Positions 124 through 64,000 of a DNA stretch of 64,000 nucleotides are shown one piece after another. This stretch comes from Thalia democratica (taxonomy: Eukaryota). The DNA lies in contig OZ241830.1 in the NCBI GenBank assembly GCA_965202585.1, positions 33,046,001 to 33,110,000 on the forward strand, read 5' to 3'. A program made the position numbers and the translations under genes. The notes beneath the pieces were generated by a model. That model had not been told where the DNA came from and did not search any database. It worked only from the letters and a program-made list of their open reading frames with translations. The stretch's first letter is position 1; every line of letters begins with the position of its first letter.

Positions 124-3100
124 ATCAATGAAATAGAAATAGAAGACGTGAAGGCAAACACACATTACCAAATCAATGTCAGACCTTTTAACTCAGTTGG
201 TAATGGACCAATTTCAGAAACACTAACAGTTGATACTCCACCAGGTATAAAGCAAAAGATGTATAAACTCAAGAATCTATTACTATTAAAATATGAACTA
301 AGTTTTCATTATAAACTTCTTTTTTAACCAAACTACTATTAATATTAATAATATTAATAAACTACTAATTCTAAAATAATATTTAATACTCTTATAAAAA
401 TAAACTTTTATGTGTACTAAACTTTAATTTTAATGATAGTGCACGGAGTGATATCGGTGGCTGAGGACAAGATCGAGTTGAAGCAGACAGACGGTAAACT
501 GAAGTTAAAAATACTGAGGGAAGGTGAAAATAGGGGTAGGGTTGTTGTGCCTTGGATGGTTAAAACAACATTGCCGAAATCTGCTTACAAAGTTAGTGAT
601 ACATGCAATTGATAACTAAAATTATAATTTACTATAATATTGTTTTGTTCTTTAACTGTTATGTTTTTAATAAGTTATAAATATAAAACAAACGTCTAAA
701 AAAATTTCAAGAAAAAAAAAAGGATTTAAAAAAAAAATGATAACAAAATATTTTTTTTACTAGAATTCATTAAATATTTGAAGTATGACTTTTTTTCGCA
801 GAACTTTAGCGGTCATGAAACTTTCAAGGACGGCGAAAAAGAGAGCACAATTAAGTTTGATTTACCCAGCAATCCTCAAAATAACGAAAAAGAAGACTTC
901 AGGTAAAATCTGAATAAAGAGTTAATGTATGTTTAAACAACTAATCAACTTTGCGTCTTGCATCAAAATCATAACTAGTTGTTTTTTAGCTATAACTCAA
1001 GCTCCCTAATGATATCTGTTTTAGTAATGTAAAATAAGTTTCTTAAATAAATCTTTAAACATCAATTCAGCATCATACTGGGTCAACCCACCGGCGGCTC
1101 GGTCCTCTCAGAAAAGGCCGAGTGTCACGTCATAGTCACGCACGACATCCAGCCCGGAAAAATACAATTCCACAAACCCTCGTACGAGTTCAACCAGACA
1201 GATGTGGAGGTCGTTGTGAAGGTGGTGAGGTCGGTGAACTGCAGCGGAAAGGTCAGGGTTCCGTGGAGGGCCATTGTTGAGGACGATCAGTTTTCTCCCT
1301 ACATGGAAATCGGGGGTCACGAGACCTTCAAGAGCGGCGAGGAAGAATCTCACATCAAAATCAAGATTCCACAGGTGAGGATCGTTTAACCTTCTAAAAT
1401 ATATTTATTACAAGTTTTTCTACAACTAAAACAAGCTTTACCTTTAAAGAAATAAATGAATATAGTTAAAACTTTATTGCATTCGCTTGATTATAAAGAT
1501 TTTCAGTATTCATTTTTTAATGCTGTTTTTGATTACTTTAGTAAACCTTAAGGTTTAGCAGTTCTGTGAGTAAAAGTAAAAACAGCACAAAATACTTTTA
1601 AAATTTTACAGGATCCGCGCCCTGTCCTCAAGGACAATTTTAAGATCATCTTGATGAAGCCAAAACCTGATAGCAGCATCATTGACGCAGATTGCAGTTG
1701 TGACGTCACAGTTGTGAACGACATAACACCGGCAGTCATTGAAATGCTGGAGGAGGATGTTAAGGTGAAGCAGTCGGATGGAGAACTGTCATTACACGTG
1801 CTCAGGAGCGAGGAACTGAAGGGAAGGATCGTGGTTCCGTGGAAGATCTTGCCGGAAAGCGACGACTCCGTTTACATGAACGTCACAGGTAATGAAAACT
1901 TATTTATAATAAACACTTAAAAAAGTTTGAGCAACTAGCTGTTGTTAATCATCAATATTTTGATTTGCTTAATATACATGTCTGTGATTATGTTTTTACA
2001 TTCAAAATTTTATTTTTCAATTTCATTAGAGACTTGTATGATTTGATAAGTCTGCTAAAGTTATAATACATAAAGTTTAATACATAATTTTTAATATAAC
2101 ATAGTTAAACTTTTTTTTTTTTGCATAGATTACAGATGGTTAACAAAATAAATATTACAGGTGAAGAGACATTGGAAGACGACGAAGAGAGATCAACGAT
2201 TGAAATCCAACTTCCTCAACTGCCTCTGTCCAACACAGAAGAAACTGTTTCTGTTGTGTTGGACGAACCGTACGGTGCTCCCGGAAAACTGGGCAACAAG
2301 AGAAGTTGCATCGTTACTATCAGACACGATAAAGGTTTGCTGAAAGTGATACTGTTTTACTACTTGACTCAGACTTTGATTTTACTTAGATGTAACTTAT
2401 GATTTTTTTTTACTGTACACAATGAAAGTTCTAAAATATGTTCAAAACAAAGTTCATATGATATCAAAAATCACTTTTTATCAGTATCAAAAAAGCAAAA
2501 CGTAATTTTCTAAAAACTAAAAATACATTTTAATTGCATCTGTAGCTTTTGCGCACCTTATAGTTATACCCAAAAGTTTTAAACATAAAACCTAAAAGTG
2601 TCTTTAGTAGCTTTAATATAAATTCAATAAAAAACTCACAGGAGAGGGAGTCATTGAAATGGAGAAGGCGCAGGTCACGTGCAAGAGTTCAGACGAGGAG
2701 GTCGTGGTTGTGGTGTTGAGAAAAGAAGGAAGAGGTTTCGCCAATGAGGTTGACTGGACCGCTGCTGATGGCAGCGCTAAAATCGGTGAAAACTATGGAC
2801 TCAACAAAGGTATGTAATTGAGGACTATCATTTTGACTCAAAGCTACATTCACGTTTTTGTATCAAACTTGTAATGTTACAACTAACAGTTAGTAAAACT
2901 GTAGATGTGTTTAGAATACTGAACTGCTGAAATATAAAAAAAAATGTTAAAACATTTACATTACCAAACTTAAGTAGATAATAGTTTTTTTTTATACTCC
3001 CATCTGCTACTAAAACTAAAAAATAAATGTTTTGTTATTTTGTTGTGAATAAAAAAAATATTATCAGGAGTGGTGAGCTTCAAAGCTGGAGAAGCTTCGA

Positions 3101-3235
3101 GCGAAATCAGGATCCCTATTACTAACGATCCATCGGGAGTTGAGAGAGACTTTGTTGTTAGTTTAGGCGAAGTTGGTGGCAGAGATGTTGCTGGAGAGAT
3201 CATGTCGACGAAAGTAACCATCTCTAATGAAGCAT
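124..3235 (+). CDS. Super-repeat unit 0 (FN3 second half + 4 Calx-beta)
   Basis: Exons B 124-244, C 440-591, D 802-902, E+5'F 1071-1374, 3'F 1612-1888, G 2161-2334, H 2642-2809, I 3068-3235. Confidence 0.9.
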
Positions 3236-6200
3236 GTAAGCATTTGAATCTTATCTCAACTTTGTAATTAAAACAACTTTTTGTACAAAATCTATTATTC
3301 AAATATTTTATAGATAATATATCAAAATTTACAATTTATAAATTTACCTAGTTTTTTAAAATAAAAACAATCGATTAGTTTGTTCAAATTTTCTAATAAT
3401 TTCCAACAGTGCTTCCAGGAGCTGTCAGTAACTTGGAAGGTGAACTCGCCAGTCCTTCATCCATACAAGTCAAGTGGGCCGAACCCGAAGAAGGGGGCCC
3501 CATTGACGGGTACAAAATAATATACTGGAAACCCAACCAAGACCCTAAAGTTATTCCGGTAGACAAAGATGTGAGTGTTATATATTAGCTTTGTTGAACC
3601 CAATGTTTGCTACACTGAAAGGATAAAAAAAGGATAGTTTAACATAATGTTGAATTAAACTGTAAAAAAAACAATAAATGTATTTAAGCTACTACTTTAC
3701 TTAAAACTTTTTTTTTTCAATTTAGACAAGCTAAAGCTTTCTGTTACTGACACTTCATTTTCCTTAAGTCTTAAACTTAAGTCTTAATCGTTTGTATCTT
3801 CGAAGTAACTCAAAAGTAAATTTTGAACGAGTCTAAGCTAACATTTTTACCATCAACTTATGAATTAGGTGACCCAAGGTGTAATCGAAAACTTGGACCC
3901 ATTGGTTCCTTACAAAATCAAAGTGGTTGCCACGAACAGTGTTGGTGATGGTCCTCCGTCTAAAACCTCATCTGTCGAAACTCCTGGAAGTTAGTATATG
4001 CAGTAATTTCTTATAAAGTTTTGGACTTGTTATAATATAAGTAGTTGTTTTACTTAAACTATAAAAATGATATAATGCAGATTATATTACAACTATTTTC
4101 ACAAAATACTTGAGATAGAACTGACTGTGTATTAAAATATGAAAGTAGAGTAAATGAAACATTATGGTAATGTAAAAATAAAAATAAGATAACGATAATA
4201 TATTATTTATAACAATTTGCTTGTAGCAGTAACATTCGAAAACTGTTATGCGATATTTAAGCTTTTAAATAAATAATGTTTAGCAACTTTGAGTAAACTT
4301 TAAGCTATAAGCTTAAGCATAACTTAGTTGTAATTGGTAAAAGTTTATTTTATTTTCACAGTACCCGGAATGTTTGAGTTTGAAAACAATGAGACTGCTG
4401 TTAATCAAAGCGATAAGAAGCTTGTAGTGAAAGTAGTGAGAAAGGACGGTAAGAATGGAAGAGTAATTGTTCCGTGGAGTACTTGTGGTTGCGAGGAGGA
4501 TTCTTATTATAAGGTAATTAATTATTTTATTAGCAAATAGTAAGTATAAAAAATCAACCTAAAAAAATTATATTCCATTCCAGTTAAGCTAATAGTTTTT
4601 GATTTATTTTAAGTAAAAATTATACTTAAACTCGAAAGTAAAAACTGTTACTTAAACTGAGTTTTAAAACAATGGAATTTACGTTTGAAATTATTTTATT
4701 ATAACTTTTTTTAATTTCCAGGACTTAAATGATCAAGAAACATTTAAGAATGAAGAATTAGACAGTCACATTGAAATAGATCTACCAACAAAACCTCAGT
4801 CGAATGATAAAGATTCTTTTGTGTTAGTTATCATTAAGTTTTGCCAGGTGTAATTCTTATTATGACGCATTTAAAAAAAAAAATGCTATAAATATTAGTA
4901 GAAGCTTGTGGCTAAAATTTTGTATAATATTCAAGTAACATTAACAGTATGTTAAAGGATAATTAAGTAATACTTAATCTACAGTATAAAACTGGGTCAA
5001 CCTTCTGGTGGAGCAAGTTTGGGTGAAAATGTTGAATGTCGAATCACAGTTACCAACGATATTTTGCCGGGAAAAATTTATTTTGCCTCACCGACAGTAT
5101 CAGCTAAACAAACTGATGAAGAAATTGTTGTGAAAATAATAAGAAGCCAATACACTGAAGGTAAAAATAGCTTAAAAAACTATTTGATTAAATTCATTCA
5201 TTTCGATATTCATATAGGAATGTAGTTTACTAAAATAAGTATACATAATAAAAAAAAAACAGACAAAGTAAAAGTTGGGTGGAAAACAGTCTGCAAAGAC
5301 GAGAACTCTCCGTTCGCAAACATTTCCGGAGTGGAGACATTCGAAGAAGATGAGGACGAATCCCACATCGAGATAAAAAATCCCCAGGAAGCCAGAAACG
5401 AAACAAAAGATAATTTCGACATCGTGCTTAGTGATCCGAAACCTTCGACTTCTGTTGTCGACAAAAACAACAAGTGCAGCGTCACCGTCGATAATGACGT
5501 CATAGAAGCTGTGCTGCAAATGACGAAGGATAATGTTAAGGCGAAGCAGAGTGATGAGAAAGTAGTCGTTCCGGTTGAGAGGACAGACCAGTTGAAGGGA
5601 AAAGTTACTGTTCCGTGGAAGATCCAACCTGTGAGCTCAGACTCCGTTTACATGAACATAGGAGGTTTGTTAATTTCTAACAAGAACTTTAGTTGTTAAT
5701 ATATAAGGTTGAGGTGTTTTAACATTAAATTTGACTTTAAAATATTATATTAACAAGTTAAGTGAAAACATAAGTTATACTAGTTTTTGGGACTGTAGAT
5801 TTTAGTTTTTGACTACTCTGAGTACAGTCAAGCTTTAAATTACTGTTTTTAATAGTTTTTTTTGTTGTCTATCTTAAACAGAACAACAAAATGTTTTTTT
5901 TTTTTTCTACAGGCGAACTTAAATTAGACGATGATGAGAAAGAAGGAGAAATTGTCATTGAAATTCCTCAACTTCCGCTGTCGAACACAGAAGAAACGGT
6001 GACTGTTGTTCTTGAACAACCATACGGTGTTCCTGCTAAATTAGGAAAGAACAACAGCTGCAAGATGTCCATCACACACGACAAAGGTCAGTTTTATTAT
6101 ATAATTATTCAAATGATTGGAAAATTTCAGAACGAAAAACATCAAAAAATATTTCAATTACACGTTTATAGAATATTTAAAACTAAATTGTGCTAATTAT

Positions 6201-9200
6201 ATTACCAATTTAATATTTTTTGATGACTATTATAAGTTTTATAATATTTTAACTAAGTTTAGAAATAATTATTTGTAGCTTGATGCTAATTCAACTAAAA
6301 AATATTTGTACTCAATGCAGGAAAAGGAATAGTCGAGATGGGATCTTCACAAGTAACTTGTTCAAGCGAAGACGATGAAGCTCACATTTCAGTTATCAGA
6401 AAATTTGCATGCGCTTTTGCAGCTCAAGTTCACTGGTCAGCTACTGATGGTGACGCTTTATTGCAGCAGCATTACGACATGAAATCGGGAGTTCTCAATT
6501 TCAAAGCTGGTGAGTCTCAGGCCAATATAAAGATCCCGATCTTGAACGACCCCAGTGGCAAGACGCGTCATTTCACCGTGTTTATCGATGACGTAATTGG
6601 TAGGGACAAGAAAGGAGAAAAGCTGGAAACAAAAGTGGTTGTTGCCAACAAAGCAGGTTATTGTTGTTCTTTAATTTAAACCATCTTTTTTTTTTCGTTC
6701 AAGTAGATTAAGTAAAGCAAATTTCATTTCTTAAAGGTAAATATACTAACAGCTTGTCAAACTTAAAAAAAGATAGTAAAAAAACTAACCTGTTTAAACT
6801 TGTAACTACTTATTTTTTGTAGTTGAATTTGCATCAGGGTACTACTAATATTTTCAAACAGTCCTCCCTGGAAAAGTGAAAGACTTGTCGGCCGAGTTGG
6901 AATCCCCCACATCGATACACGTGGCATGGAAGAAGCCGGAGGAGGGTGGTCCGATTACTGGGTACAAATTTATGTATTGGGACAGACCCGAGGAAATCAT
7001 CGCTGCTAATGTCGACCATGATGTATGTTTATATAATTTTTTTTGAGCTCTATACTTATCAAATTATTTTCACGACCTTTATAAGTAACTCTTTAAGAAA
7101 CAGTTTGTTGATGAAAACCTGATTTTAATATTTTTTTTATTAACTCATTGTAAGAATTTAACTAATTAAAAAGTTTTATTTTATTTTAAGTATGCCTACA
7201 CATAAGTATAAGTAGTACACATTCCTGAAATAAATAAACCAGTTCAGCTCAACGATACTTTTCTGTTTTTCTGATAGTTTAGGAATATCAAGGTTCAAAT
7301 TGTGTCTAATTGAAAAGTTTCAGATTAACAAACCAGTTTAACAAGAGTAGTTTTGTAGAAGTAGTTTTCACGAATAGTTGTGCTAAACTGTTTTTTTTTC
7401 ACAAAACTTAAATTTTAATTTAAAAAAGAAATGTACTACAAAGTATAAATTTAATTTTGTTTGCGATAATGTTATAAAGAAAAATAATAATGCCATTAAA
7501 ATTTCAGGTGAACGAAATGATAATAGAGCACTTGGAGCCGATGGTAAAGTACAACATGAAAGTTGTACCTTTCAATGAAGTAGGCGATGGCCCAGATTCT
7601 AAAGTCGTCTCTGTCGAAACTTCACCAAGTAAATACATTTTCCGTTAAGTTTAACTAGTTAAACGATGATATCTACATTAATTCATCGTAATAATCAATT
7701 GAAAAAAAAAATATTACTTATTTATCATAAAACATTATAACTGATTTATGTTAAACCAACTTTTACTAACTCTGCAAAAATATTTTTACTTAAAAGTTTA
7801 AGTTAAAATATTCTAAGTGCTAGAGACCAATTAAATACCCTAAACCGTGCAACCTTTTAAGCTCGCACATGATATTTTTTAGTACCTGGTGTAATTAGTC
7901 ACGAGAAACCAGAGGCTTCTGTCAAGCAAAGTGATAAGAAGCTGGTGTTGAAACTGACCAGAGATTCAGGTGTTAATGGTCGGGTTATTGTACCTTGGAA
8001 ATTGTGTGCTTGCAATGATGATTCGCCTTACAAGGTAATATTAATCATAAAATACTGTAATTTTTGCGTATATAGTGAAGGACGTTCTACATAAGTGTGT
8101 ATTAAAGTAGAAATATTAGATATTACATATATAAACAAATATACAGCAAATTATTTCTTATATAAAATCTAAAGTATTAACTGTAAAATAAAATGAAGGC
8201 ATAGTCATAGTAAAACAAAGTAGTTATCAAAGTAACATAAATATATATATTTTTAAATTAGCAAGGTTTATAAGCAAGATAAACAATTCTAGGAAATGGA
8301 AGGTCAGGAAACATTCAAAGACGGTGAAATTGAAAGTCACATTGAAATTGAACTTTCTGAAACTCCACAAAAATCAGACTCTGAAACATTCACGTGAGTT
8401 TGATCAACTAATGTACAAATTCGTTATTCGTTATTTTTCAACAAAGCAAAACTTGGAAGTTTAAATTCATAATAGCAAAAAAGTTTCTATAGCATAAATA
8501 GACATAATGGTACTTTTATATAATCGAAACTGTAAGTTACAATTCCATTTTTTTTTTTTTTCAAAAAAATTATTTAGCTTTTTAATATAAGTAGAAAAAA
8601 CACTGCAATAACTTTTCAGCGTTACTTTGGGTCAACCTTCTGGTGGAGCAAGTTTGGGTGAAAATGTTGAATGTCGAATCACAGTTACCAACGATATTTT
8701 GCCGGGAAAAATTGATTTTGCTTCACCGACAATATCAGCGAAACAAACTGATGAAGAAATTGTTGTGAAAATATTAAGAAGCCAATACACTGAAGGTAAC
8801 TATAAATAGCACAGAATTAAAGCTAAACATTACTTAAGATAGAAAAGTATGGAATTTGATTTATCTGCCAGGAGGTTTTAGTAAAGAAACTTTAAACATA
8901 AACACTTATACTTTAATAAATTAGTAGTAAAAATTAAAAAAAAGTAACATTACCAGTTAACTTTTTTTTACACAGACAAAGTAAAAGTAGCGTGGAAGGT
9001 GGTTTCAAAAGACCCCGACTCCCCGTTCGCCGGCCTTTCTGGAGTTGAGACTTTCGACGAGGGCGAGGAGGAATCCCACATCGAAATCGACGTGCCCCAG
9101 GACCCGCGTGACGTCACAAAGGATTTGTTCGACATTGTGCTCAGCGACCCGAAACCTTCCACTTCCGTCGTGGAGAAAAACAACAAGTGCCAAGTCACAG

Positions 9201-12200
9201 TCGACAATGACGTCATAGAAGCTGTTGTCAACCTGGACAAGGACGAGGTTGACGCGAAGCAGTCAGACGGGAAGATCGAGCTGACGGTCAGGAGGAGCGA
9301 GCAGTTGCAAGGAAACGTTGTAGTTCCGTGGAAGGTTCTTCCAAGCAGCTCCGACTCTGTTTACACCAATCTTTCAGGTATCTTAAAATTTAAACTATCT
9401 AAACATCTTTAAACTTTAACATCTAAACTTTTGAGCGGTTCGTTTTAAAATCACTACAGAGTGTTTACAACTAGTGTACAAAGAGCAACTTAAAAAATTG
9501 TATTTAATTCTTTAAATAAAAGTTTTATAATTATTATAATTGTAAAAATCTTAATCAGGTGATGTAAAGCTCAAAGAAGGTGAAGATGAAGGTTTGATAA
9601 AAATAAAACTTCCACAAGTAGCTTTGTTAGACGAAGAAGAAAAGGTCACAGTCGTCATAGAAGAACCCCACGGTAGCCCATCTAAACTAGGGCCAGAAAG
9701 AAGTTGCCTAGTAACCATCAGGCACGACAGGGGAGAAGGAATAATCGAGATGGGATCTCCACAAGTAACTTGTTCAAGCGAAGACGATGAAGCTCACATA
9801 TCAGTGATCAGAAAGTTTGCATGCGCTTTTGCAGCTCAAGTTCAGTGGTCGGCTGCTGATGGTGACGCAATATTGAACGAGCATTACGACACACAAACTG
9901 GTGTCCTTAAGTTCAAAGCTGGAGAGGCACAGAAGCTTATCAAGATTCCGCTTCTCAATGACCCAAGCGGTAAGACGCGCTTCTTTACCGTTTCAATCGA
10001 TGACGTAATTGGCAGGGACACGAAAGGGGAAAGTCTGACCACTAAAGTCGTTGTCGCAAACAAAGCAGGTAATTGGTAAAAGTGTTGAGTTTGTTTTGAA
10101 TATTAAATTTTTTTTGTATTGGTTTTTAGAAATTAGTAGTACGTTTTGTGAATAATGTTTGGTTATATTTTTTAATTTTTCATAGTTCTTCCTGGAAAAG
10201 TGAAATCCCTGAAAGGAGAGTTAGAAGGACCATCAGTAATAAACGTGAAATGGGAGAAACCTGAACAAGGTGGGCCCATTGACGGATACAAAGTTATTTT
10301 CTGGGACAAACCTGGAGATGAGAAGACTGTATCCGTAGATCCTGATGTTAGTTTTTGTTGTACCACAAACGCCATTGATAGTTTTATATTTAAGTTATTA
10401 GGAAATATATTTAAGTAATCAAACTAACATATTACTCTTTGAAAACATACATTTCCGAGAACTTTCAAGCCTAAGTAGATACTTCTAAACTAATTTAAAC
10501 TATAACTTTAATTTTAATTATAATTCTTTTATAAGTACTTTAAATAATCTTCTAAATTTTAATTCAAACAAATATTGACAATGTGAAACAACTTTTAAGG
10601 TTGAAGAAATGAACATAGATAATGTCGAACCTTTGACAAAATACAACATCAAAGTTGTTCCGTTCAACAATGTCGGAGATGGTCCATCGTCTAAAGCAGT
10701 CTCAGTAGAAACTCCTGGAAGTCAGTCTATCTAACTTTCATTTATTACTAGTATAAATTTCTATCACACCAAACTACTTGAGATCATAATAAAATAATAT
10801 CTACAAAAATATAAATTTTACTTACTTTTCTTTGTATACAACACAGTTTACATCATATATTAAAACTCAGTTCCGGGATCGGTTCAGTTCGAGAACTACT
10901 TGAAAGAAGTGGGTCAGACAGATAAGAAGCTGGTCATCAAGTTGGTAAGAAGCAGTGGCAAAAATGGTAGGATTGTTGTTCCGTGGTCAGTGTCAAAATG
11001 CGATGATGGATCCGGTTTCAAGGTAAATTTACTTTTAGTAGTATGAAATTTGTCTTATAAAGTAATTGACTTTTAAAGTCATAACAACAACTGATTTTTT
11101 TGTATCTTTTATTCTATTTAAGAGTAATTTCGAAAAGTATACCTATTTGTTCACTAATTGTTAACTTAATTTAAAAGAATATTTAATATGCTTATAACTA
11201 AACACTTTATAGGACTTGAACGGACAAGAAACTTTCAGAAACGGAGAAACAGAAAGTCACATTGAAATAGAACTACCAGAGGAGCCCCAGTCAGCTGATA
11301 ACGAAACATTTGTGTAAGTTTACACTTTTAACTATAAATTCGACATTTTAACGTAAACTAATGTTGAAACTCGCATGAGTGAGCAAAATTTATGTACGCT
11401 TAAGTATGTCTTTAAATTTATAAACTAATAATGTTAGCCTGTTTATATAACTATGTAGTTTAAAAAAAAACATTTGTGACAAAATAAAAAAGCAAAGTGT
11501 AATGCACATGTAAGTTCGAACAAAACATCACAGCATAACCCTCGGAGAGCCATCGGGAGGAGCCAGTTTGGGAGACAACACTGAATGCAAGGTGGTTGTT
11601 ACTTACGACGTGCTTCCTGGTCTGGTTGATTTCGTAAAATCTTCTGTGAATGCCAAACAGACCGATAAGGAAATCGTTGTTGCTCTGAAAAGAACTCAGT
11701 ATAAACAAGGTAATTTTGAATAATTTATTTTTGTTTTCATTATTTTTTCAATTTTTTTTTTTACAAAAACTGTTGCTAGCTTTTTTCACACAAGTTGAAA
11801 TAACTAAGTAATCACCTAGCTTAGTTTTGAAACTAAATGCTTTTTTAAAAATAAAATGATTTGTCAGTTTATTATGATATTCTAGTTTTGCTAACTAAAA
11901 AACCTTGTTAACAAAACAGACAAAGTAAAAGTTGGGTGGAAAACAGTCTGCAAAGACGAGAACTCTCCGTTCGCAAACATTTCCGGAGTGGAGACGTTCG
12001 AAGAAGATGAGGACGAATCCCACATCGAGATAAAAATTCCCCAGGAAGCACGTGACATCAGCAAGGACGTTTTTGACGTCATGCTCATTGACCCGAAGTC
12101 ACCCACCGCCACTGTCAAGAAGAACAACAAGTGCGTTGTGCAAGTGCAGAACGACGTCGTTCAGAGCTTGATTAGCATGGACGATGACGAGGTTGGTGCG

Positions 12201-54200: not shown

Positions 54201-57200
54201 AAAGTAGCTCTTAAGATAGTTCTAAGCTTTTAGTATTTAAAAAAAGTTGTTAATAAAATTACTTTAAAGTATTTTTCAACTAATTGTTTCTTTTAACGTA
54301 AAGATAATTACCAAAACTAAAACATTCCTAACTATTTAAATTTAACACAGTGCCACCGAAAGAAGTGAGCAAATTTGAAGCGAAACTGACTGCTCCGACC
54401 ACAATCAGGTCAACTTGGACGGCACCCAAGTCAGGAGGAGGAGTCGAAAGTTACAGGGTCAGCTACTGGAAGGCGCCTAATAAAGTTAAAACAATGGAAA
54501 TACCGCAAAATGTAAGATTGCTTTGTAAACACTAATATTTTCACAAAAAAAATTATTAGAAGATTATAAAAATAAAATTTTATACGCACTTAGAAACTTA
54601 TTTTTGGTAAAAAAAGTAGTCAAAGAAACTATTTTTTAATAATCTCAACAAAAAAATATTTTTTTTATCTTTTAAAAACTATTAGGTGCAAGAAGCGATT
54701 TTGGAAGACTTGGAAGCAAACACTCAGTATTCAGTAAATGTGAGAGCATGCAATCAGGCCGGAGTTGGTGAAGCAAGCAAAACAATAAATGTACAAACTC
54801 AACCAGGTTTGTATAAAAAAAATATTAACAGCTCTTTGAATTATATTATAGATTAATTTAATATCTTACACATTTATAAATTCTAAATATGCATTCATTA
54901 GTCTTGCACAGTTAAGATAACTTAATACTTCCCAATTTTCTACTTTATAGACTAGTTGCTGTTATTCATAGTAGTCTTTCAAATTACAACTATAGAGATA
55001 TAGATAAGCAAATAAATATTTTTACACTCTTAATGTATGTTTTTGTTTTTTTTTTATTTAACAGGTAATAACTAAATATTCTTGTTTATGTTTGTAAAAC
55101 TTTAGTCTTAAAACTGTAGACCGTATTATACAGAAAGTATAACAATCTATTACAGATCTAGCAATTTCATACCAAGCTCTGCAGAGAGTCAAGGCAAGCG
55201 AAAAGAAGGCAAACTTCAAACTGACCAGGAACAGGAGCACTTTCAGAGAGACGGTCATATGGAACATTGTCAAGCAAGTGAAGAAATCCTCAACAAAATC
55301 AACTGGATCCATGCTTAGCTCTGCCTCTAGGTAGAAAAAAAATTAGTGCAGTCAAATACAAGTGTTTTTGAAAAATTAAGCATAAATCATACTTCGACTT
55401 TGAAATCCTTTGAAAGCTGACTTTAAACTGTACTATATTTTACTCATTTTTATTAAGCCTTATTAAGTATTTTTAAGTTTTCTTTGTGTTTATGAAAAAT
55501 CTTACTATGTATTAATTAATACGGTAGTTTATAGGTTGTTTTAGAAATTGCTGTAAAAAAATATTACATATAGTGAAAACCTTAAGTTTATATAAACATA
55601 ACAGAAAACTGCTATAGTTTTCAGTTAAAACATAAATAAATGTCTAATAAACCAAATTCCACAGTACATTGTCGATAATGTCGAGTAGTGATGATGAGCA
55701 GCAACAACAGACTTTCACAAAAACTTCAGGAATGCTTGGTACCAAGAAAGTTACCCACGTCACAAAGGGGGTTATTGAGTTTCCTGAGAAATCTGATCAG
55801 GTCAGCATAACATACTACTATTTAGCTAAATTTAATTCAAAACTATAAATGTCTATGTAACCATAATAAGAAGTATTTCGCTCATAGTAAGTTTACTAAA
55901 ATTGTATAAAACCTCATGGAGGTTATATTCTTTTTTTTTTACAACAAGGATTATTACAGTTTTAGAAAACACCAGTACAATGAAAATATTTATAAAACTA
56001 CTACCTGTACTAACTTATCGAAATACTTTCAGGTAATCATCGAATTCCCACTCCCTCAACGAATGAAGCACTCTTCCTCAATCTACCACCTGATAGTGAG
56101 GAGAAAGGCGAAGAAGGAAGAGACAGAAGAAATGGTTGAAAGGGAAAGCCCCTTGGTTAATGCCGAGTTACATGTCATCAATGATTGTGGTAAGATTTTT
56201 ATTTCATTTTTGCTACGGAAAATAACTTTAAGTTTTACATCATTTAGCTCATAGTCTTTTTTGTCATTATTTATGAGAATTTGAAAACTCGTCGTAAAAT
56301 CATAAAGTTTATGAGTTATTTTTTATGTTATTAAGAGTTACATATTTCGGTGTAAAAAAACACTTTGTAGAATTTATTTTTAATTAAAAAGCTTTTTTTT
56401 TGTAACTTACAACAAACCTTACTTTACACAGTTGACAACTAAAAACAAGTTATTCAAACAACAACATATTATCACAGGATACCCAGGACGAGTGAAGAAG
56501 CCGATAGTGAGCACGGAAGTTCCAGGAGAAATGACGGTTAATTGGGAGCAGCCGGAAGAGGGAGGTCCCGTGGAAGGATATAAAATTATTGCCAGGACTA
56601 AAGGTTAAACATAGTTTAATGTTTGATAAAAATATACCGAAAGGATAAAATACTTTATGTTTAAAGTCCAAAAAAAGTTTTGTTACACTGTGCAAAAAAA
56701 ATTAGTTGAATATAATTATGTATAAACTAAATAAAAGATAGTATAAAATGTTAGTAATAAATAAAGTTTGTCTCCTTAAATTCAAACAAGTTGAGAACTA
56801 TTTGTGTTCAATTTAGAACCTAAATTATATACATCTATATAAACTAAATATCTAAAACAAAGCACAATTACAGGACAAAAGGATATTATTCAGCGAGTTA
56901 GCAAAGGAGTGTACACATACACGTTTACACAGCTGACTTCATCGACCCAGTATGACGTCACAATATACGCTTACAATCACGTTGGCGAGGCGAGAGCGTC
57001 AAAGACTGTACATTACACCACACAAGAAGGTAATATAAGGATTCTTAATACGTTTTAACTCTGCTTTTTATGTATGGTGTTTGTTTTTAGTTTGTGTAAG
57101 TTAGTTACACTTATTTTTGTCAACGACAACTGTTTTTATTATTCAAAATTGAACTTATAAAAAAGTATTAGTTTGCTATAGCTGTTTGCAAACCTTTTTT

Positions 57201-60200
57201 GCTCAAACTTTCTACAGACTTTATTAATTTTGTCGATATGCAACAGAGACGATCACGGTAGTGAGGAAGTACGAGCAGGCGACCAAGCACTCATCTGAGA
57301 GATACTTCTCGTACAAGAGGAGTGACAAGGTAGCGTTGATACCGCTCAACAGAGGGTTCAGCAAGGGAGACGTTCAGTTGACGTGGCACGCCAGGATGAG
57401 AAGGAGGAAGGAAGAAGGAGAAGAAAGCTCAGAAGATGACGATCAAACCGATATTGGGGTAAAAGCATTTAAATCTTAATGAAAACATTTTTAAGAAAAG
57501 TTAAATAAACTTGAATTATTTTTTTTATTGCCAGCATGAACTTAAACCTGATCAAACAACTTTATTTTTAGAAATTACTTAGTACTTGAACAAGAATTTT
57601 ATTAGCTTTTTTTACTACTGAATGTTTTTTGCTTAAACAAAACGACTTTTTTCTTCAAGTCTAATGATGGAGACTGGGCGACCGGAACAGTTCAATTCAA
57701 GGACGGCCAATCTACAGCCGAAGTGAAGATACCGTTGGAAGACGTTCCTACTACGGACGAGAAGTTCAGAAGCTCCTTCTACATCTACGTCGTCGATCAG
57801 AAGAAAAAGAAGAGAATGACAACAGTCAAGTGCGACTTTATCGATGACAGGAGTTAGTGCTTGAATGTTTGCTGTGGAAATGTTAATTAAATTAGCGTTG
57901 TGCTTTTTCACTGTTTTTCTGTGAAAGTCTTTTTTGCAGTGATAACAATTACCATGATAAAACAGGTTTAAAACAGTTTTAACTCACGTTTTAGCTTTGT
58001 TTCAGTGTTCTGAATTTTTATTAACCTTTAAATACGTCATTTAGTGTCAACGACACTAGAAGACTGTTACAAAATTTGAATCCAGCAGACGGAATGCCTA
58101 TTTAAGTATTTTGTTAATACTTTTTAACTATTTTTTTCCAGCATTCGGGGAAGTTGGCTTCAGCCAGCCCACTTACGTCCTGCGCGCCGGAGTGGCGAAA
58201 TCAGCCGAGAGGTTCGCGTTGATACTCAAGCGGGAGAAAGGAAGCGACGGTGACGTCACTATATCATGGAAGGCGCGGAACGATGATTTCGCCGACTTGC
58301 TGTTGAAAGCAACCTCAATGGAGGGCGAAGTTAAATTGAGGGAGGGAGAGAAGAGCGCCTCGTTGTGGCTGCACCTGTGCGAGGGGTGGCGCGATTTGTT
58401 GAAAGAGGTTAACGTAGGGGTCGATCTGGTGAAGGCTTCGGGTGGAGCTTCACTGAATACGGAGAAAATGACGAGCACAGTTTCACTTGTTCCTGGTGAG
58501 AAGTTTGATTGGTTGAAACTTTCTTTTCGCTTCCTTTCTAATCTCTTCTCTTTATTCTTTATTTTCAAAATTTGATTTGTCTTCTGGAATTTATATGACT
58601 ATCTCATCTACCATTCTCTACTTATCTACGTTCTAATAAAAAACTCTATTCAGTGTTTCGTTTGAAGATTATTTTACTTTCGCTAGATTTTATTTAACTT
58701 CTAGTTATTTTTTGTACTTGAACTCATGTAATTTTTCTTTCTTTGTTTCAATTGTAACCTTTTTTTCAACTATTATTTTCAGACAGGTTTTTGTTCTTCT
58801 TTATTTATACCTTTTTTTTTTAATTAATGTAGAACATAGTTATGTTTTAAAATATAATTTTTTTTGTTTTAAAATCAAATTAATTCACAAGTAAACATTA
58901 TAATAAACCATGCAAAATTATTTATAGCGGAAAGAGGTGTGCTTCAGGTTCACCCAAGAAAGGTCAAATTGAAGTGGCCGCTTGTTGAAAGAAGCATGAA
59001 GTTTGAAGTTGAAAGACTCGAGGGCTGCCACGGATCGGCCAAATTCGCGTGGAACATTGAGAAGGGAGAAAAGTCCAAGGAGGACATTATCGGGTATTTC
59101 CCGACCAAGCAGGGCGAGTTTGAAATGAGGTCGGGAGAGAAGAAGGGCAAGTTCTCCTTACCTTTATCCAAGGAAAGCGAGGGACCTGCTTCGGAAGCGC
59201 TTGCTGACCTCAGGATCGTCGCCATGACGAAGGGGGTGCAGGTTCACCCGGACAGCTCCAAGGTAAGGATGCGGCTGGTCGCCGAGAGGGGAGTGATGGT
59301 GGTGAGACCGACTTCAGAGAGGGTCGAGTGCCCGAAGAAGGACGGGTTCGTCACTTTCTACGTGGACAGGCAGCAGGGCGCGTACGGGAAGGCGTACAGC
59401 AGGTGGAAGGTGGAGACTGGGGACGAGAGGCTGACCAGGCAGATGTTCAGCAAGATGGAGGGAGACTTGCACATGAGCAACGCGGAGAGCACCGCCACGC
59501 TGAAGATCCCCGTGAAGACGCCGACAGAGTACCAAGTGAAAGACGTCAGGATCAAGCTGACGTTACTGCCGCTGACTCCAGGAGTGAGCGTGAAGAGCGG
59601 AGGAGAGTCTACGTCCTGCGAGGTGCAGATGGTCTTACCCGAGAAGAAGGACAAGATCCAGTTCGCTTCTGAGAATCTTAACGTGGTGACGTTGGGCATG
59701 AAGCAGATCAGAGTGCCAATAGTGAGGGAAGGTAGTCTGAAGGGCGACGCGTACGCGGTGTTCACATTGTCAGGAGAAGGGGAGAAAGTGGTGATGACGC
59801 ACGACAGAAGGGTGAGGTTCAAGAACAGAGAGGCGACGGCAACAGCCGACATCATGCTCAGAAAGGACGCCAAGTTCAGGGATGCGCAGAAGTTGAAGCT
59901 GACCTTAAACAGCGCTAGCGGAGCCGAACTGGGCCTAAGAAAGGAGATTCTTCTAAACCTGCAGCCCAACGACGACTCGCCACCGTTCGAGCTCAGACTT
60001 GGAAACTCTCCGGACGACGTCCAGGTACCGATGAAGTTCGACGCCAGGAAGGTCAGTCAGATCATGATCCCGATCACCAGAGACGGCGACCTCAGCGAGG
60101 ACTTTGAGGGGTACGTGACGACGAGGTCGGTGACCGCCGTGGACGGCAGCCACTACGAGGGCGTGGAGAGAAAGCGGGTGCTGATCAGGAAGGGGGAGAG

Positions 60201-63200
60201 GACGACGTACGTGGTTATCAAGGTGATCAAAACCAAGTATACCAAGACGATGCACTTTGATCTTCACTTGACGGCCACCAAAAAGACGTACAAGTGGAAC
60301 AAGACCATGAAGATACACCTCCTACCTACAGAGAGACCGGCTACTAGGTTGCTGATGCCCAAGCCGAGCGCTATTGAGGTTGACGAGGCGGGCAACAGGG
60401 TCGTTGTCGACATCGGCAGGAGGGGAAGCGGTGAGATCAACGCCGAGTACGAGACGGTGGACGGTTCGGCCAAGTCCGGGGTGGACTACGAGCACTTGCA
60501 GGGCACTTTCAAGATGACCGAGGACCAGGAAGTTGCCAGGTTGGTGGTTCCCCTGATAGCCGGGGTGAGAAGAAACGTCGAGAAGAACTTCCAGCTGGTT
60601 GTGAGGGACGACCTGGCCGAAGACGAAGCGACGATTCTCCTTCCAGCGTGGGACCCCGCCAACGAGGTCGTCTACCCCGACGTGCTGACGGTGTCGGCCA
60701 AGAAGAGCGACACGGCAATATTGCTGATAAAGCGCAAGAACCCAGACGACAGGGAACTGGACCTCGTGATACCGTACAGGACTTTTGACGGCAGCGCCAA
60801 GTCCGACATCAACTACGTGGACACCAGAGACGAAGTGGTGATCGGCAAGGGCGACGTCGAAGCGCAGATAGAAATTCCCCTATTGCACGGCAAGAACAGG
60901 AGAATAATCACCTTCTTCGTGCTTCTTGGCACCTACAAGAAGCACCGGGTACAGATCGACCTCGCCCCTGTTCGCAAGGACGGACCCGGGGTTTTGGGAT
61001 TCCCCGTGGCGCAACTGGATGTCGCAATGGACAACATGGAGCCCGGGGTGGACGTCGTTAGGGTGCCGGTGGTGCGAAGGAACGGCGTCAAGGGCCAGGT
61101 TTCGGTGGACTTTTACACTAGGGACAACACTGCCGTGGCTGAAGAGCATTACCGCGAGAAATCCGGTCAGGTTGTGTTCGACGACGGCGAGCAGAGAAAG
61201 TACGTGGAAGTTGACTTGATAGAAGGAGCCGACTACAAGAAGGACCGCAGTTTCACCGTGGAGCTTGGAGTCACGGAAGGAGGAGCCGATCTTGGATCGA
61301 AGTACGAGATAGAGGTGCGATTGAACGCCGCACTGGACCCGACCCAACCCGGCGTTCTGGGCTTCGACTCGCCTCGGGTGCCTTTCACGTCGCAGTACCT
61401 GAGCGACCACAACCGGGAAGCCATCATCGTGTACGTGCCGGTGCGGAGGACGATCGGGTACAAGGGAGATGTGTCGGTGGACTACTTCACCAGGGACAAC
61501 ACGGCGGTGGCCGGCAGGCACTACGAGGAGAGCGAGGGCCAGCTGGAGTTCGGGCCGACGGAGACGCTGAAGAGGATCGAGATCATGATCCTGCCGGGGG
61601 CGCACTTCGACAAGAACTACTCGTTCAGCGTGGAGTTGGGAGCGGCTTACGGCGGCGCGGAGATCGGAACTTACGAGACGGAGGTCGTCTTGACCCCGCT
61701 GCAGAGGAGAAGGAGATCGGAGGACAGCATGTCTTCGTCCGACGACCCTTCGTCCTCTTCGAGCTCGTCTTCGTCGAGTTCTTCTTCGGATTCGGATGAC
61801 GAGGACAGCGTGTTCAAGAGGAACCAGAAATTGAGGAAGAGAAGCAGGAAGATAAAAACCATAATAACCACCAGGACCAAAACGATAAGGAAGACCACCA
61901 AGCAGCATAAGAAGCTTTCGAGTCGAGGTATGTTTTATTTAATTCTTGTTTTTTTTTAATTTTTAGTTAAAATATATTTGTGTAGCTAAGCGGTGGTTAT
62001 TTAGTTGGTGTTATGGTGTAAATATCATAAAAAATATCGGTGTATTGTATATCGGTGATAAAACGAACATTAAGTTTTTTAAAGGTGTTAAAATCATACA
62101 AAGTACTTTTTTGCACAAATGAACCACTTGCAGCGCAAGAGAGCGCCGGCGAAGTGGGTTGCACCCGCGACGGGGTCAAAGTCGAGCTGGGTAGCAAACA
62201 CGTGGACGTGCCCATACTCAGAACTGAAGGCAGCAAGGGCGCCGTCTCGGTCGAGTGGTTCGTGCGTGAGGACACGGCGATAGAAGGAACTGATTTCAGG
62301 GAGTGTCAGGGGGTGGCGTACTTTGCCGACGGGCAGACGAAGTCGATGGCTAGGGTCGATTTGGTGCACAGTTCGAACTTGGACGGGGACCAGGAGAGGA
62401 GGTTCATACTGGAGCTGGGCAACACCGACGGGGGTTGCACCCTCGGTTGCTACGAGACCAGCGTGACTATTTACAGGCCCCAAGGTAGTTTACTTCGTGG
62501 ACAAGGGTTTTTCCCTATGATTAGTTAGAAATTCTCTTTTTGTAGAAATTTTCTAAATAATCAATAATATTTTTACAGGATAACTTCTCTGGTGGCAATT
62601 CCTTTCAAAAATTAATTTGACTAACAAAATCTTTTTTTAATTACTAACTGCATGCCTATAGCTAAAAGCTGCTTGTTTTTGTTTTGTGTTTTTATGCATG
62701 GTAATTGCTAAATATTTTCAATAGTTTAGAAGTATGCAACTTGTAATTATATAGGTCTACTTAACATAAATTTAAAAATAAACAAAACTTATGACATTTT
62801 AATAAGCTTATAACTTCTTTAAACTTAAATATACTCCTACTAACACATCAAGTAATGAAACTGGATTCAAGATAGAAATAAGGGTGGGTGATAAAACAAT
62901 TTAAACTAGGCATGATTAGGCTTAAAAGAGCAAGGCAAAGCTAACAGTTATAACAAAATTTAAACAGGCAAAGCTTATAATATGTTGAATATTTTCACTC
63001 TTTTAGACTTTAAATTTTTATTGAAATTAATACATAAAAAAGTAAATTGGTTACTGGATAATTAATTACTTACAAGAGTTTTATTTATTTGAGCTAAAAT
63101 TACTTTTTTTTAAAAGAAGCATGCAAGTAATATTGTAAAAAATTGTTAAGTTTGAACATTTTTTTTGTACTTTGTTACAATTTCTAAAACTTTTCTAAAC

Positions 63201-64000
63201 TAAAAATAAAACATTTAGTTTAAATCTTAATACTTAGAAAAAATAAAATGTTTGTTTGTCAAACACTAAAAGTTTTACAAAGCTACCCGAAAAGTTTATT
63301 TGAAATCTACATAAATTTTCAGAGTATAAATAGCTATTAAGTAAAGTTTTCGAAATGTTATTAATGTTAAGTATTAAACATATCTTAAAACATTTTAATT
63401 AATATTTTAGTACCTGTTGTTGCCCCACAAAACGTCAGAGTTCAAGCTGGAAGTTCTTCAAGTCTCAAAATTACATGGTTGAGTCAGGAAGCTAAAATTA
63501 TCGAATATGTTGTAAGTTTTATGCTGAAAATATCTAAAACTAAGTTGATGGATTTAAATAGTATTTTAACATCAAATATGCTTTTTATCTAAACTTTGTC
63601 CAATTCTAATTATAAAAATTACTGTTACAAGTTCGCTCAATTTAGTGTAAAATGATGCATATATGTATTGAATTTTTAAAATACTTTTCACTCTGTATAA
63701 AGTTTATTCGTAAAACAAACATAATATATTTCAATAAAAACAATTTGTTGTAAAAGTTTCAACTTTCTTTTTTACTCTAAAAAATCAAAAAAATTGTGCT
63801 AAAACTTATATTTAATCGCCAGGTGGCGTACAGACGCACTGGAGAATCGAGCAACCAGCTGGTGAAGAGAAAAGTGCCCTCATCCGAGACGTCCTACGTC
63901 ATAGAGGGGTTGAAGGCTAATAGTAGCTACATCGTGGTGGTGACGGCGGTTGCCGAGGGCGGCCACAGGATGTCGTCGCAGATCGTCACTTGCAAGACTT
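124..64000 (+). CDS. Giant multi-exon Calx-beta/FN3 super-repeat protein (internal part, about 9,880 aa in window, 5' and 3' ends outside)
   Basis: 144 exons with GT..AG boundaries. Phases chain without a stop or frameshift from 124 to 64000 (about 29,650 coding nt). FN3 signature (W..P..GGP..GY.I.YW; L.P...Y...V..fN.VG.GP.S) and Calx-beta signature (V.R..G..G.V.V.W...DG.A..G..Y....G.L.F..GE....I.I) recur throughout. The + strand ORF-track fragments are pieces of these exons. Confidence 0.93.
3410..6656 (+). CDS. Super-repeat unit 1
   Basis: A 3410-3570, B 3869-3989, C 4362-4513, D 4722-4822, E 4985-5160, F 5263-5664, G 5913-6086, fused H+I 6321-6656. Confidence 0.92.
6862..10068 (+). CDS. 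Super-repeat unit 2
   Basis: A 6862-7022, B 7508-7628, C 7883-8034, D 8293-8393, E 8620-8795, F 8976-9377, fused G+H+I 9559-10068. Confidence 0.92.
10186..13334 (+). CDS. Super-repeat unit 3
   Basis: A 10186-10346, B 10600-10720, C 10871-11022, D 11213-11313, E 11534-11709, F 11920-12321, fused G+H 12577-12918, I 13167-13334. Confidence 0.92.
13517..16503 (+). CDS. Super-repeat unit 4
   Basis: A 13517-13677, B 13896-14016, C 14158-14309, D 14417-14517, E 14586-14761, F 14987-15388, G 15665-15838, H 15964-16131, I 16336-16503. Confidence 0.92.
16716..19677 (+). CDS. Super-repeat unit 5
   Basis: A 16716-16876, B 17019-17139, C 17365-17516, D 17664-17764, E 17964-18139, F 18335-18736, fused G+H 18987-19328, I 19510-19677. 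Confidence 0.92.
19936..23114 (+). CDS. Super-repeat unit 6
   Basis: A 19936-20096, B 20537-20657, C 20907-21058, D 21127-21227, E 21410-21585, F 21749-22150, G 22347-22520, H 22683-22850, I 22947-23114. Confidence 0.92.
23405..26946 (+). CDS. Super-repeat unit 7
   Basis: A 23405-23571, B 23737-23857, C 23982-24133, D 24366-24466, E 24594-24769, F split 25045-25255 + 25477-25667, G 25900-26073, H 26355-26522, I 26779-26946. Confidence 0.92.
27096..30720 (+). CDS. Super-repeat unit 8
   Basis: A 27096-27256, B 27523-27643, C 27837-27988, D 28147-28247, E 28311-28486, F 28728-29129, G 29300-29473, H 29748-29921, I 30553-30720. Confidence 0.92.
30093..30352. mobile_element. MITE (non-autonomous DNA transposon), 260 bp, in the H-I intron of unit 8
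   Basis: Imperfect TIRs of about 60-66 bp: left 30093-30158 GGGTAGCTTGAGAATTGTGAAAATCATTAGCA..., right 30293-30352 whose reverse complement reads GGGTAGCTTGAGAGTTGTGCAAATCATTAGCA... (30 of the first 32 nt identical). Flanks AGCATAAA (30085-30092) and AGCATAAC (30353-30360) look like an 8-bp TSD with one mismatch. No coding capacity. Confidence 0.85.
30985..34302 (+). CDS. Super-repeat unit 9
   Basis: A 30985-31145, B 31316-31436, C 31658-31809, D 32006-32106, E 32303-32478, F 32677-33078, G 33284-33457, H 33682-33849, I 34135-34302. Confidence 0.92.
34644..38173 (+). CDS. Super-repeat unit 10
   Basis: A 34644-34804, B 35021-35141, C 35380-35531, D 35696-35796, E 36037-36212, F 36327-36728, G 37011-37184, H 37542-37709, I 38006-38173. 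Confidence 0.92.
38397..42010 (+). CDS. Super-repeat unit 11
   Basis: A 38397-38557, B 38922-39042, C 39242-39393, D 39595-39695, E 39993-40168, F 40333-40737, G 40879-41055, H 41441-41608, I 41843-42010. Confidence 0.92.
42129..46296 (+). CDS. Super-repeat unit 12
   Basis: A 42129-42289, B 42594-42714, C 43088-43239, D 43430-43530, E 43906-44081, F split 44399-44616 + 44874-45057, G 45301-45474, H 45732-45899, I 46129-46296. Confidence 0.92.
46524..50559 (+). CDS. Super-repeat unit 13
   Basis: A 46524-46684, B 46896-47016, C 47277-47428, D 47678-47778, E 47936-48111, F split 48668-48913 + 49094-49255, G 49422-49595, H 49827-49994, I 50392-50559. Confidence 0.91.
50938..54011 (+). CDS. Super-repeat unit 14 (divergent edge unit)
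   Basis: A 50938-51104, B 51204-51324, fused C+D 51572-51824, fused E+5'F 52103-52527, 3'F 52821-52982, fused G+H 53222-53569, I 53844-54011. Confidence 0.91.
54351..54806 (+). CDS. Last array-type FN3 domain
   Basis: Exons 54351-54511 (..PPKEVSKFEAKLTAPTTIRSTW..) and 54686-54806 (VQEAILEDLEANTQYSVNVRACNQAGVGEAS..). Same lengths as A and B. Confidence 0.9.
55156..56189 (+). CDS. Divergent Calx-beta-like domain with a long Ser/Thr/Lys-rich insert
   Basis: Exons 55156-55330 (ends phase 2), 55665-55800 (ends phase 0), 56033-56189 (ends phase 1). Phases chain. Retains R..W and G.IEF...S....I.FP elements. Confidence 0.75.
56478..57029 (+). CDS. FN3 domain
   Basis: Exons 56478-56603 (YPGRVKKP..VNWEQPEEGGPVEGYKII) and 56874-57029 (..YTFTQLTSSTQYDVTIYAYNHVGE..). 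Confidence 0.88.
57247..57852 (+). CDS. Divergent Calx-beta-like domain with charged insert
   Basis: Exons 57247-57458 (..IPLNRGFSKGDVQLTWHARMRRRKEEGEESSEDDD..) and 57660-57852 (..GTVQFKDGQSTAEVKIPL..). Confidence 0.8.
58142..58495 (+). CDS. Calx-beta domain exon
   Basis: FGEVGFSQPTY..LKREKGSDGDVTISW..EGEVKLREGEKSASL..GGASL. Phase 1-1, 354 nt. Confidence 0.88.
58928..61927 (+). CDS. 3,000-nt exon: about 8 tandem divergent Calx-beta-like domains plus a Ser/Asp tract and a Lys/Arg/Thr tract
   Basis: Acceptor tttatag at 58921-58927, donor gtatgt at 61928. Open frame equals ORF 58939-61959. Canonical motifs include TVDGSAKSGVDY, TFDGSAKSDINY and TRDNTAVA..HY..SGQVVFDDGE. Confidence 0.92.
61717..61809 (+). 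repeat. Coding low-complexity poly-Ser/Asp tract
   Basis: SEDSMSSSDDPSSSSSSSSSSSSSDSDDEDS, encoded by mixed TCN/AGY codons, so not a simple microsatellite. Confidence 0.9.
62134..62484 (+). CDS. Calx-beta domain exon
   Basis: ..VDVPILRTEGSKGAVSVEWFVREDTAIEGTDFRECQGVAYFADGQT..RFILELGNTDGGCTLG. Phase 1-1, 351 nt. Confidence 0.9.
63411..64000 (+). CDS. FN3 domain (runs off the window)
   Basis: Exons 63411-63511 (PVVAPQNVRVQAGSSSSLKITW..) and 63823 to beyond 64000 (VAYRRTGE..YVIEGLKANSSYIVVVTAV..). Confidence 0.87.

Follow-up and report, generated by a model that had tools for sequence, protein, structure and literature searches.

A chain of about 90 FN3 and Calx-beta domains encoded in one gene of Thalia democratica: probably the inner tail of a giant beta4-type integrin

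Gene organization and the super-repeat array

The stretch of Thalia democratica DNA analysed here (hereafter the window) comprises 64,000 nucleotides of contig OZ241830.1 (positions 33,046,001 to 33,110,000 of the forward strand, GenBank assembly GCA_965202585.1). It is an internal piece of one very large animal protein-coding gene, the product of which strings together about 90 beta-sandwich domains without linkers. The GC content of the window is 33%, with no N, and its + strand is rich in short open segments whose translations recur every 3.2-4.4 kb. Exon lengths were obtained with a self-trained exon finder, and the nine exon classes were then mapped back with tblastn and their borders checked. 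Their canonical lengths (161, 121, 152, 101, 176, 402, 174, 168 and 168 nt) total 1,623 nt, or 541 codons. Within 124-54011, 130 exons, each with an AG acceptor and a GT donor, are spliced into 8,077 codons without a stop. The final 10 kb of the gene model was curated by hand through inspection of phase and splice sites. The full + strand model, which is a computational prediction, has 144 exons, all flanked by AG and GT, amounting to 29,653 nt and 9,884 codons with no stop and with all 287 splice dinucleotides intact. The single continuous frame of about 9,880 residues described in the initial annotation, which had been made from the sequence alone, is thereby borne out. The predicted product has a mass of 1,087 kDa (1.09 MDa) and a pI of 5.1, in agreement with the mass above 1 MDa that had been claimed; the accompanying term "titin-scale" is generous, in view of the approximately 3-4 MDa of titin.

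The 143 introns are 63-926 nt long (median 226) and mostly in phase 1 (92 of 143), with a GC content of 22% as against 46% in the exons. Introns between super-repeat units (117-378 nt) are no longer than those within units, leaving no room for separate genes, and the unit borders are uniformly in phase 1. The window opens in the middle of a domain at an acceptor site, where unit 0 lacks its first FN3 exon, and thus the gene certainly extends upstream of the window. No transmembrane-like segment is found within the 9,884 predicted residues.

The array consists of 15 units, 14 of them complete (541-548 aa) and one partial, all on the + strand, which agrees with the 15 super-repeats of about 541 aa noticed initially. 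Each unit is encoded by nine exons and has the order FN3, C1, C2, C3 and C4, the last four being Calx-beta-type domains; in a hidden Markov model (HMM) scan of the spliced protein, the domain envelopes abut without linkers. Unit 0 (124..3235) comprises the second half of FN3 and C1-C4 on eight AG/GT-flanked exons, the first FN3 exon lying upstream of the window; its 402-nt exon is split at 1374/1612, and its frame is continuous into unit 1 (3410..6656, 541 aa), where exons 7 and 8 are fused (6321-6656). Exons 6, 7 and 8 are all fused in unit 2 (6862..10068, 541 aa; fused exon 9559-10068), and exons 6 and 7 in unit 3 (10186..13334, 541 aa; 12577-12918) and unit 5 (16716..19677, 541 aa; 18987-19328). 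Unit 4 (13517..16503) and unit 6 (19936..23114), both of 541 aa, have the nine canonical exons. In unit 7 (23405..26946, 543 aa) an extra intron splits the 402-nt exon (25255/25477). Exon mapping and splicing define unit 8 (27096..30720, 543 aa), unit 9 (30985..34302, 541 aa), unit 10 (34644..38173, 541 aa) and unit 11 (38397..42010, 543 aa). Further introns split the 402-nt exon in unit 12 (42129..46296, 541 aa; 44616/44874) and, at the border of C2 and C3, in unit 13 (46524..50559, 543 aa; 48913/49094). The most divergent is unit 14 (50938..54011, 548 aa), in which exons 2 and 3 as well as 6 and 7 are fused (51572-51824 and 53222-53569), the 402-nt exon is split at 52527/52821, and positions 4-104 of the Pfam Calx-beta profile are matched on 52104-52526.

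Identity of the domains

The HMM scan of the spliced protein gave 18 FN3 domains and, within the units, 60 Calx domains. The region distal to the array adds 12 Calx-like domains, eight in a 3-kb exon modelled with AlphaFold2 and four on neighbouring exons, to a total of about 72, the same numbers of both domain types as counted at first reading. FN3 and Calx-type matches account for the whole spliced protein. Neither Ig, kinase nor PEVK was found, and neither 7TM/GAIN, EAR/PTX, CSPG nor wreath was present on the exons tested or in the spliced 9,884 aa of the window.

Both families are recognized by Pfam on single exons above the curated cut-offs, as the initial annotation had led one to expect. 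Calx-beta (PF03160, cut-off 27 bits) scores 50.1 bits on 9555-10076, covering the fused exon of unit 2, 150.4 bits in four stretches of the 3-kb exon and 33.3 bits on 62031-62525, and fn3 (PF00041, cut-off 25 bits) scores 30.6 bits on the half-domain exon 3400-3585 and 25.1 bits on 56876-57028. A profile of 13 exons encoding the N-terminal half of FN3 matches exclusively FN3 structures in the PDB. C1, C2 and C3 are mutually homologous (hhalign probability 99.6-99.9%), and C4, which gives the best Pfam Calx-beta match of the unit, is more distant from them (90-97%). C1-C3 reach the PF03160 cut-off only in part; they are tied to C4 by profile-profile comparison and to the second Calx domain of the Na+/Ca2+ exchanger (NCX CBD2), the solved relative of C2 and C3, by the PDB search. 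The best PDB match of C4, taken from unit 2, is the Calx domain of integrin beta4 (3FQ4, E 1.3e-4), and the distal Calx domains have the NCX CBD1-CBD2 tandem pair as their best-scoring solved relative (E 1e-19). Apart from 3FQ4, all PDB matches of the Calx domains are cytoplasmic NCX Calx domains.

The acidic cluster of the NCX type (DDD..EED) is replaced by NDPS-GKT (LNDPSGK) in C4 and by HSSNLDGD in the last Calx domain of the window. C1-C3 have a sequence of the LPxxPQ type at this position, and a DDD cluster is absent from the unit consensus of all four domains C1-C4. Membership of the Calx-beta family does not require the acidic calcium cluster. The Calx domain of integrin beta4 is likewise described without the NCX acidic calcium cluster (Alonso-Garcia 2009). 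Judged by these motifs, the unit Calx domains look like structural rather than calcium-sensing modules, as in integrin beta4.

Region distal to the array

Beyond unit 14 the regular pattern gives way to the order FN3, a Calx-like domain with a Ser-rich loop, FN3, two Calx-like domains, a 3,000-nt exon, a Calx-beta exon and an FN3 domain crossing the end of the window, all on the + strand. The first FN3 domain (54351..54806, two exons) was located by mapping and the HMM scan. The Calx-like domain that follows (55156..56189, three exons), with its Ser-rich inserted loop, has no Pfam match and is assigned by position and motif only; its junction 55330/55665 has an equally in-frame alternative, in which 55277 is joined to ~55699-55711. 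The second FN3 domain (56478..57029, 94 aa) is matched by Pfam fn3 on both of its exons (56478-56603 and 56874-57029), and its intron is shifted relative to that of the unit FN3. Two Calx-like domains on exons 57247-57458, 57660-57852 and 58142-58495 (57247..58495) have no Pfam match and give weak matches to the unit HMMs (C4, E 1.8e-4; C1, E 4.7e-7). Three of the 12 distal Calx-like domains are therefore without a Pfam match. The last Calx-beta domain of the window (62134..62484), which carries the 33.3-bit Pfam match, matches the NCX CBDs in the PDB and, over its full length, the integrin beta4 Calx domain, and the FN3 domain on exons 63411-63511 and 63823-64000+ (63411..64000) continues past the window end.

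The single 3,000-nt exon (58928..61927, 57% GC) encodes eight consecutive beta-sandwich domains, at least four of which are Pfam Calx-beta. AlphaFold2, run on an alignment of five relatives, models the exon as eight beta-sandwiches (pLDDT 74) followed by a disordered tail (~61700-61927), in which an acidic poly-Ser/Asp segment precedes a Lys/Arg-rich one. Foldseek searches of the PDB and AlphaFold DB clusters and a search of the ESM Atlas with the eight-domain model returned only generic multi-beta-sandwich or Calx proteins. An antisense open reading frame (ORF) of 342 aa with an ATG start (60880-61908, - strand) lies inside this GC-rich exon; it has no family match and is most likely a composition artefact.

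Related loci and the origin of the array

The closest database protein to the 3-kb exon, 61% identical over the whole exon, is labelled as coming from a metagenome-assembled genome (MAG) of Planctomycetota. Its contig (L001; GenBank JBCBFD010000320.1 of MAG GCA_038528015.1, 3,140 bp, 64% GC) corresponds to 58928-61927 and shares with the window both the acceptor (ttgcag|CGGAA) and the phase-1 GT donor. By these common splice sites it is an animal exon, mis-binned, whose protein has been named a bacterial Calx-beta protein, which is a contamination of a public MAG. Transfer of the GC-richer exon from bacteria was considered and rejected, as this closest relative has the same AG acceptor and phase-1 GT donor, with stops outside them.

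An exhaustive profile-free search among 1.8 billion representatives yielded further exon ORFs on unannotated AT-rich contigs, and neither an annotated eukaryotic relative nor a match with FN3 or integrin features was found among those representatives. The 150 best representatives contain no integrin motifs or families, the two motif matches being bacterial, and a length-matched search retrieved no annotated full-length relative. P0186, with 22% identity, was examined as a relative and discarded, since it is truly bacterial and has only the domain type in common. A truly bacterial protein of 2,895 aa is encoded at L005 4388-13075 (ENA ERZ23498394 scaffold_4303), between recJ, homoserine dehydrogenase and similar genes; it is 22% identical to the big animal exon, contains Calx-beta with a faint DUF4843-like signature, and shares only the domain type.

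Three loci from other species (L002/L004, L003 and L006/L007) have the distal order FN3, Calx, FN3, Calx, Calx, big Calx exon, Calx exon and FN3-FN3, the separate Calx exon standing directly after the big exon in L002, L003 and L006 as well. In two other species, exactly one complete C1-C2-C3-C4-FN3 unit is found just upstream of the distal region, with the same exon breaks as in the window and 40-46% identity to its units. Upstream of this single unit only FN3-free Calx exons are present (over 10 kb and ~30 kb, respectively, in the two species), neither foreign gene being covered in full in this comparison. Thus the 15-fold array looks lineage-specific, and as an array it is not of ancient origin. 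A tree built from concatenated C1-C4 places the two foreign units as sisters (support 0.999), and the pair attaches beside unit 14 of the window with weak support (0.37), then units 13 and 0, units 1-12 forming the rest. The simplest reading, with moderate support, is that one ancestral unit gave rise to all 15 copies by amplification in this lineage.

Some of the proximal foreign Calx exons carry acidic clusters of the exchanger type, such as DDDEEDKKF and IIDNDEFDDS (L010 2087-2254; L011, reverse strand, ~19200-19630). Contig ERZ25067576 ctg10113 has two insertions in introns of a related Calx array (L008 3570-5800 and L010 1-1679). One of them contains antisense ORFs of 442 and 268 aa without a Pfam family, and the other a sense-strand ORF for a hAT-type transposase (DUF4371 / FAM200-ZBED5-like).

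The units of the window are 39-67% identical to one another in protein sequence, the N-terminal ones being most alike, and neighbouring units have a ratio of nonsynonymous to synonymous divergence (dN/dS) of 0.11-0.25 with dS >1. The copies are therefore old and under purifying selection. Intron positions have changed among them. The intron between exons 6 and 7 has been lost in units 2, 3, 5 and 14, together with that between exons 7 and 8 in unit 2, and these shared losses among paralogous units look like gene conversion or repeated loss. The extra introns in the 402-nt exon of five units lie at offsets of 128, 211, 218 and 246 nt, the last being common to units 13 and 14. Offset 246 coincides with the C2/C3 border, and since related loci L004 and L006 have an intron at the same place, this one may be ancestral and lost in the other units. 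The other three (128, 211 and 218) look like gains.

Traces of transcription and occurrence in marine data

Run X4 (47 Mb), from the same study as the best-matching DNA runs, contains 0.80 of the sampled 31-mers of exon 58928-61927 and 0.25 of those of 3400-9400, where 0.39 of the words are exonic. This pattern is what RNA would give and could not be yielded by a genomic library of 47 Mb, although the evidence is indirect. Of the big exon, 0.21-0.22 is present in two marine metatranscriptome runs, and its end is also matched by a transcript-catalogue fragment (P0103). Individual unit exons occur at 84-97% identity on marine metagenome contigs. Metagenome proteins retrieved with a profile of the 402-nt exon are only genomic single-exon ORFs, none of them truly crossing a junction.

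A possible integrin tail and competing explanations

The window probably represents the amplified central portion of a cytoplasmic tail, that of a giant integrin beta subunit of the beta4 type, in which it would form a long rod or tether. It ends with Calx (62134-62484) followed by FN3 (63411-64000+), which is the order of the integrin beta4 cytoplasmic tail. The exon that follows at L003 crosses the border between two FN3 domains and matches the FnIII-1,2 structure of integrin beta4 (1QG3, E 2e-15) in one 60-bit stretch; two LAR-type phosphatase chains rank above 1QG3, but by summing several stretches of at most ~28 bits each. L002 shows the same order of Calx and FN3-FN3. In the gene of the window itself, the second FN3 of the pair is located past the window end, and a connecting segment, FnIII-3,4 and residues binding plectin/BP230 would also be encoded there, while the integrin beta ectodomain (PSI, beta-I with MIDAS, hybrid, EGF repeats) and the transmembrane segment would be encoded upstream of the window. 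The poly-Ser acidic and Lys/Arg-rich linkers are also counted in favour of a cytoplasmic tail. In Ciona, a beta4 orthologue has been described with Calx-like ORFs 3' of the gene, its tail being left undetermined (Ewan et al., 2005; PMC1145181). On this reading, the proposal of the initial annotation that the protein is a fixed-period beta-sandwich filament stands as a fair structural deduction from the strictly periodic, linker-free FN3 + 4 Calx-beta pattern, but the filament is probably not a free-standing analogue of titin and rather the expanded inner tail of a beta4-type integrin.

Several points weigh against an integrin. The link rests on C-terminal similarity and one paper of 2005. Neither an N-terminus, a signal peptide, a transmembrane segment nor an integrin ectodomain is in the window, and in ERZ25067576 ctg10113 about 30 kb upstream contain only Calx exons and transposons, the gene start not being reached there. 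The FN3 domains are generically similar to those of LAR, neogenin and DCC too, Calx-beta domains are extracellular elsewhere (VLGR1, FRAS/FREM, sponge aggregation factor), and the sequence evidence for a location in the cytoplasm is soft. Trans-splicing occurs in tunicates, by which an upstream integrin gene and the array could be separate transcripts. A mechanical role, finally, is pure inference.

If the integrin reading is right, the single Calx-beta domain that in vertebrates stands between the membrane and FnIII-1,2 would have been expanded into a chain of >70 domains. About 90 linker-free beta-sandwiches of 4-4.5 nm each would give, for this window, a chain of ~0.35-0.4 um when extended. 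Having no calcium sites in its unit domains, the chain would be a long and rather stiff tether or spacer, structural and not a sensor; in view of the acidic clusters in proximal exons of the related gene, only the portion of the tail close to the membrane may bind calcium. In vertebrate beta4, the distal FN3 pairs bind plakins and intermediate filaments. Here, beta4-like FN3 pairs could be held far from the membrane, or an adhesion site could be linked to the deep cytoskeleton, with the poly-Ser/acidic and basic linkers as candidate regulatory hinges. Since all unit borders are in phase 1, whole units might hypothetically be skipped to tune the length. The fuller proposal has about an even chance of being correct, namely an integrin beta of >10,000 residues with a Calx-beta/FN3 tail of roughly half a micrometre, built by a 15-fold amplification, specific to this lineage, of a module that related animals have in one copy.

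Of the competing explanations, the one that survives best, though unlikely, is a free-standing giant cytoplasmic scaffold with Calx-beta/FN3 modules like those of integrin beta4, transcribed apart from any upstream integrin gene. In its favour, no ectodomain or transmembrane segment is seen in the window or in the ~30 kb upstream of the unit in the related contig, and the relatives found are unannotated exon ORFs only; closely packed separate genes are, moreover, allowed by tunicate operons and trans-splicing. However, the gene continues upstream of the window, beginning as it does in mid-domain at an acceptor, and the related loci carry an uninterrupted Calx array in that direction. The C-terminal module order, the best PDB match of C4 and the FN3 pair of the related locus all point to beta4, and Calx-like ORFs lie downstream of the Ciona beta4 orthologue (PMC1145181).

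A giant adhesion or matrix protein that is secreted or exposed on the cell surface, with an extracellular Calx-beta array, is a still weaker candidate and is rather improbable. The largest known Calx-beta arrays are indeed extracellular, with 35 Calx-beta domains in VLGR1. The sponge aggregation factor MAFp4, also extracellular, has 29 (PMC11670116). Ectodomains often contain FN3, and that of the units resembles the FN3 of LAR, DCC and neogenin. On the other hand, none of the companion domains of such proteins (EAR/PTX, CSPG, wreath, GAIN/7TM) is found in the 9,884 aa, and N-glycosylation sequons are not visibly enriched (68, as against ~58 estimated by hand from composition). The Calx domains have about one conserved Cys each, which gives no hint of disulphide pairing, and every one of the closest solved structures is a cytoplasmic Calx domain. 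The linkers, moreover, are of acidic poly-Ser and of basic type, and the distal FN3 pair is beta4-like. The last alternative, that the window contains no single working gene and results from faulty assembly, from the decay of a repeat array or from several genes in tandem, is very improbable even though repeat arrays are prone to mis-assembly, since the units differ by 33-61% in protein with dS >1 and cannot be collapsed or inflated by an assembler, the 9,884 codons contain no stop, the 287 splice dinucleotides are intact, dN/dS is 0.11-0.25, the introns between units are as short as those within them, and single unit exons recur at 84-97% identity on marine metagenome contigs.

Significance and comparison with known systems

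Integrin tails normally have ~50 residues, and the 1,000-residue tail of beta4, which builds hemidesmosomes, is the exception. If the window belongs to a beta4-type integrin, its tail is ten times longer than that of beta4, which would alter the view of how the beta4 tail arose: the vertebrate form may have been trimmed, or the present one may be a runaway expansion. It would far exceed any known integrin in size and have the largest known Calx-beta array, would give an adhesion receptor a new way to reach deep into or across the cell, and would provide a natural intracellular rod of periodic build on which force transmission could be studied. Whether it is an integrin or not, the record of Calx-beta domains per protein is doubled, and the locus is a clean example of the recent amplification of a module, accompanied by dated losses and gains of introns. 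It also reveals a whole family of large animal exons present in public databases only in unannotated form, one of them mislabelled as bacterial.

ADGRV1/VLGR1, FRAS1/FREM and MAFp4 resemble the present protein in having long Calx-beta arrays, but theirs are extracellular, lack FN3 at a fixed period and are accompanied by 7TM/GAIN/EAR, CSPG and wreath domains. The Ig/FN3 super-repeats of the titin A-band share a fixed multi-domain tandem pattern and a megadalton, linker-free beta-sandwich chain, which suggests a rod or ruler. Here, Calx-beta takes the place of Ig, neither kinase nor PEVK is present, there is no link to muscle or the sarcomere, and the size is about one third that of titin, so that the analogy is functional only. 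The Na+/Ca2+ exchanger has in CBD1-CBD2 a cytoplasmic tandem pair, the best solved relative of the distal Calx domains, although no membrane transport domains are found here and the unit domains have other residues in place of the acidic cluster that binds calcium. Integrin beta4 (ITGB4) is alike in its cytoplasmic Calx-beta followed by FN3, in providing the nearest solved relative of C4 and in a Calx domain without the NCX acidic calcium cluster. It differs in scale, the vertebrate protein having one Calx-beta and four FN3 domains in ~1,000 residues, as against ~72 Calx-like and 18 FN3 domains in 9,884 residues here, and in the 15-fold five-domain super-repeat, which is contained within one window of a longer gene. 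As the initial annotation had supposed, no description of a periodic [FN3 + 4 Calx-beta] super-repeat, or of a protein with >35 Calx-beta domains, was found in the open literature or among annotated proteins. Collectively, the domains and the probable family are already known, and it is the super-repeat architecture and the size of the array that are probably new.

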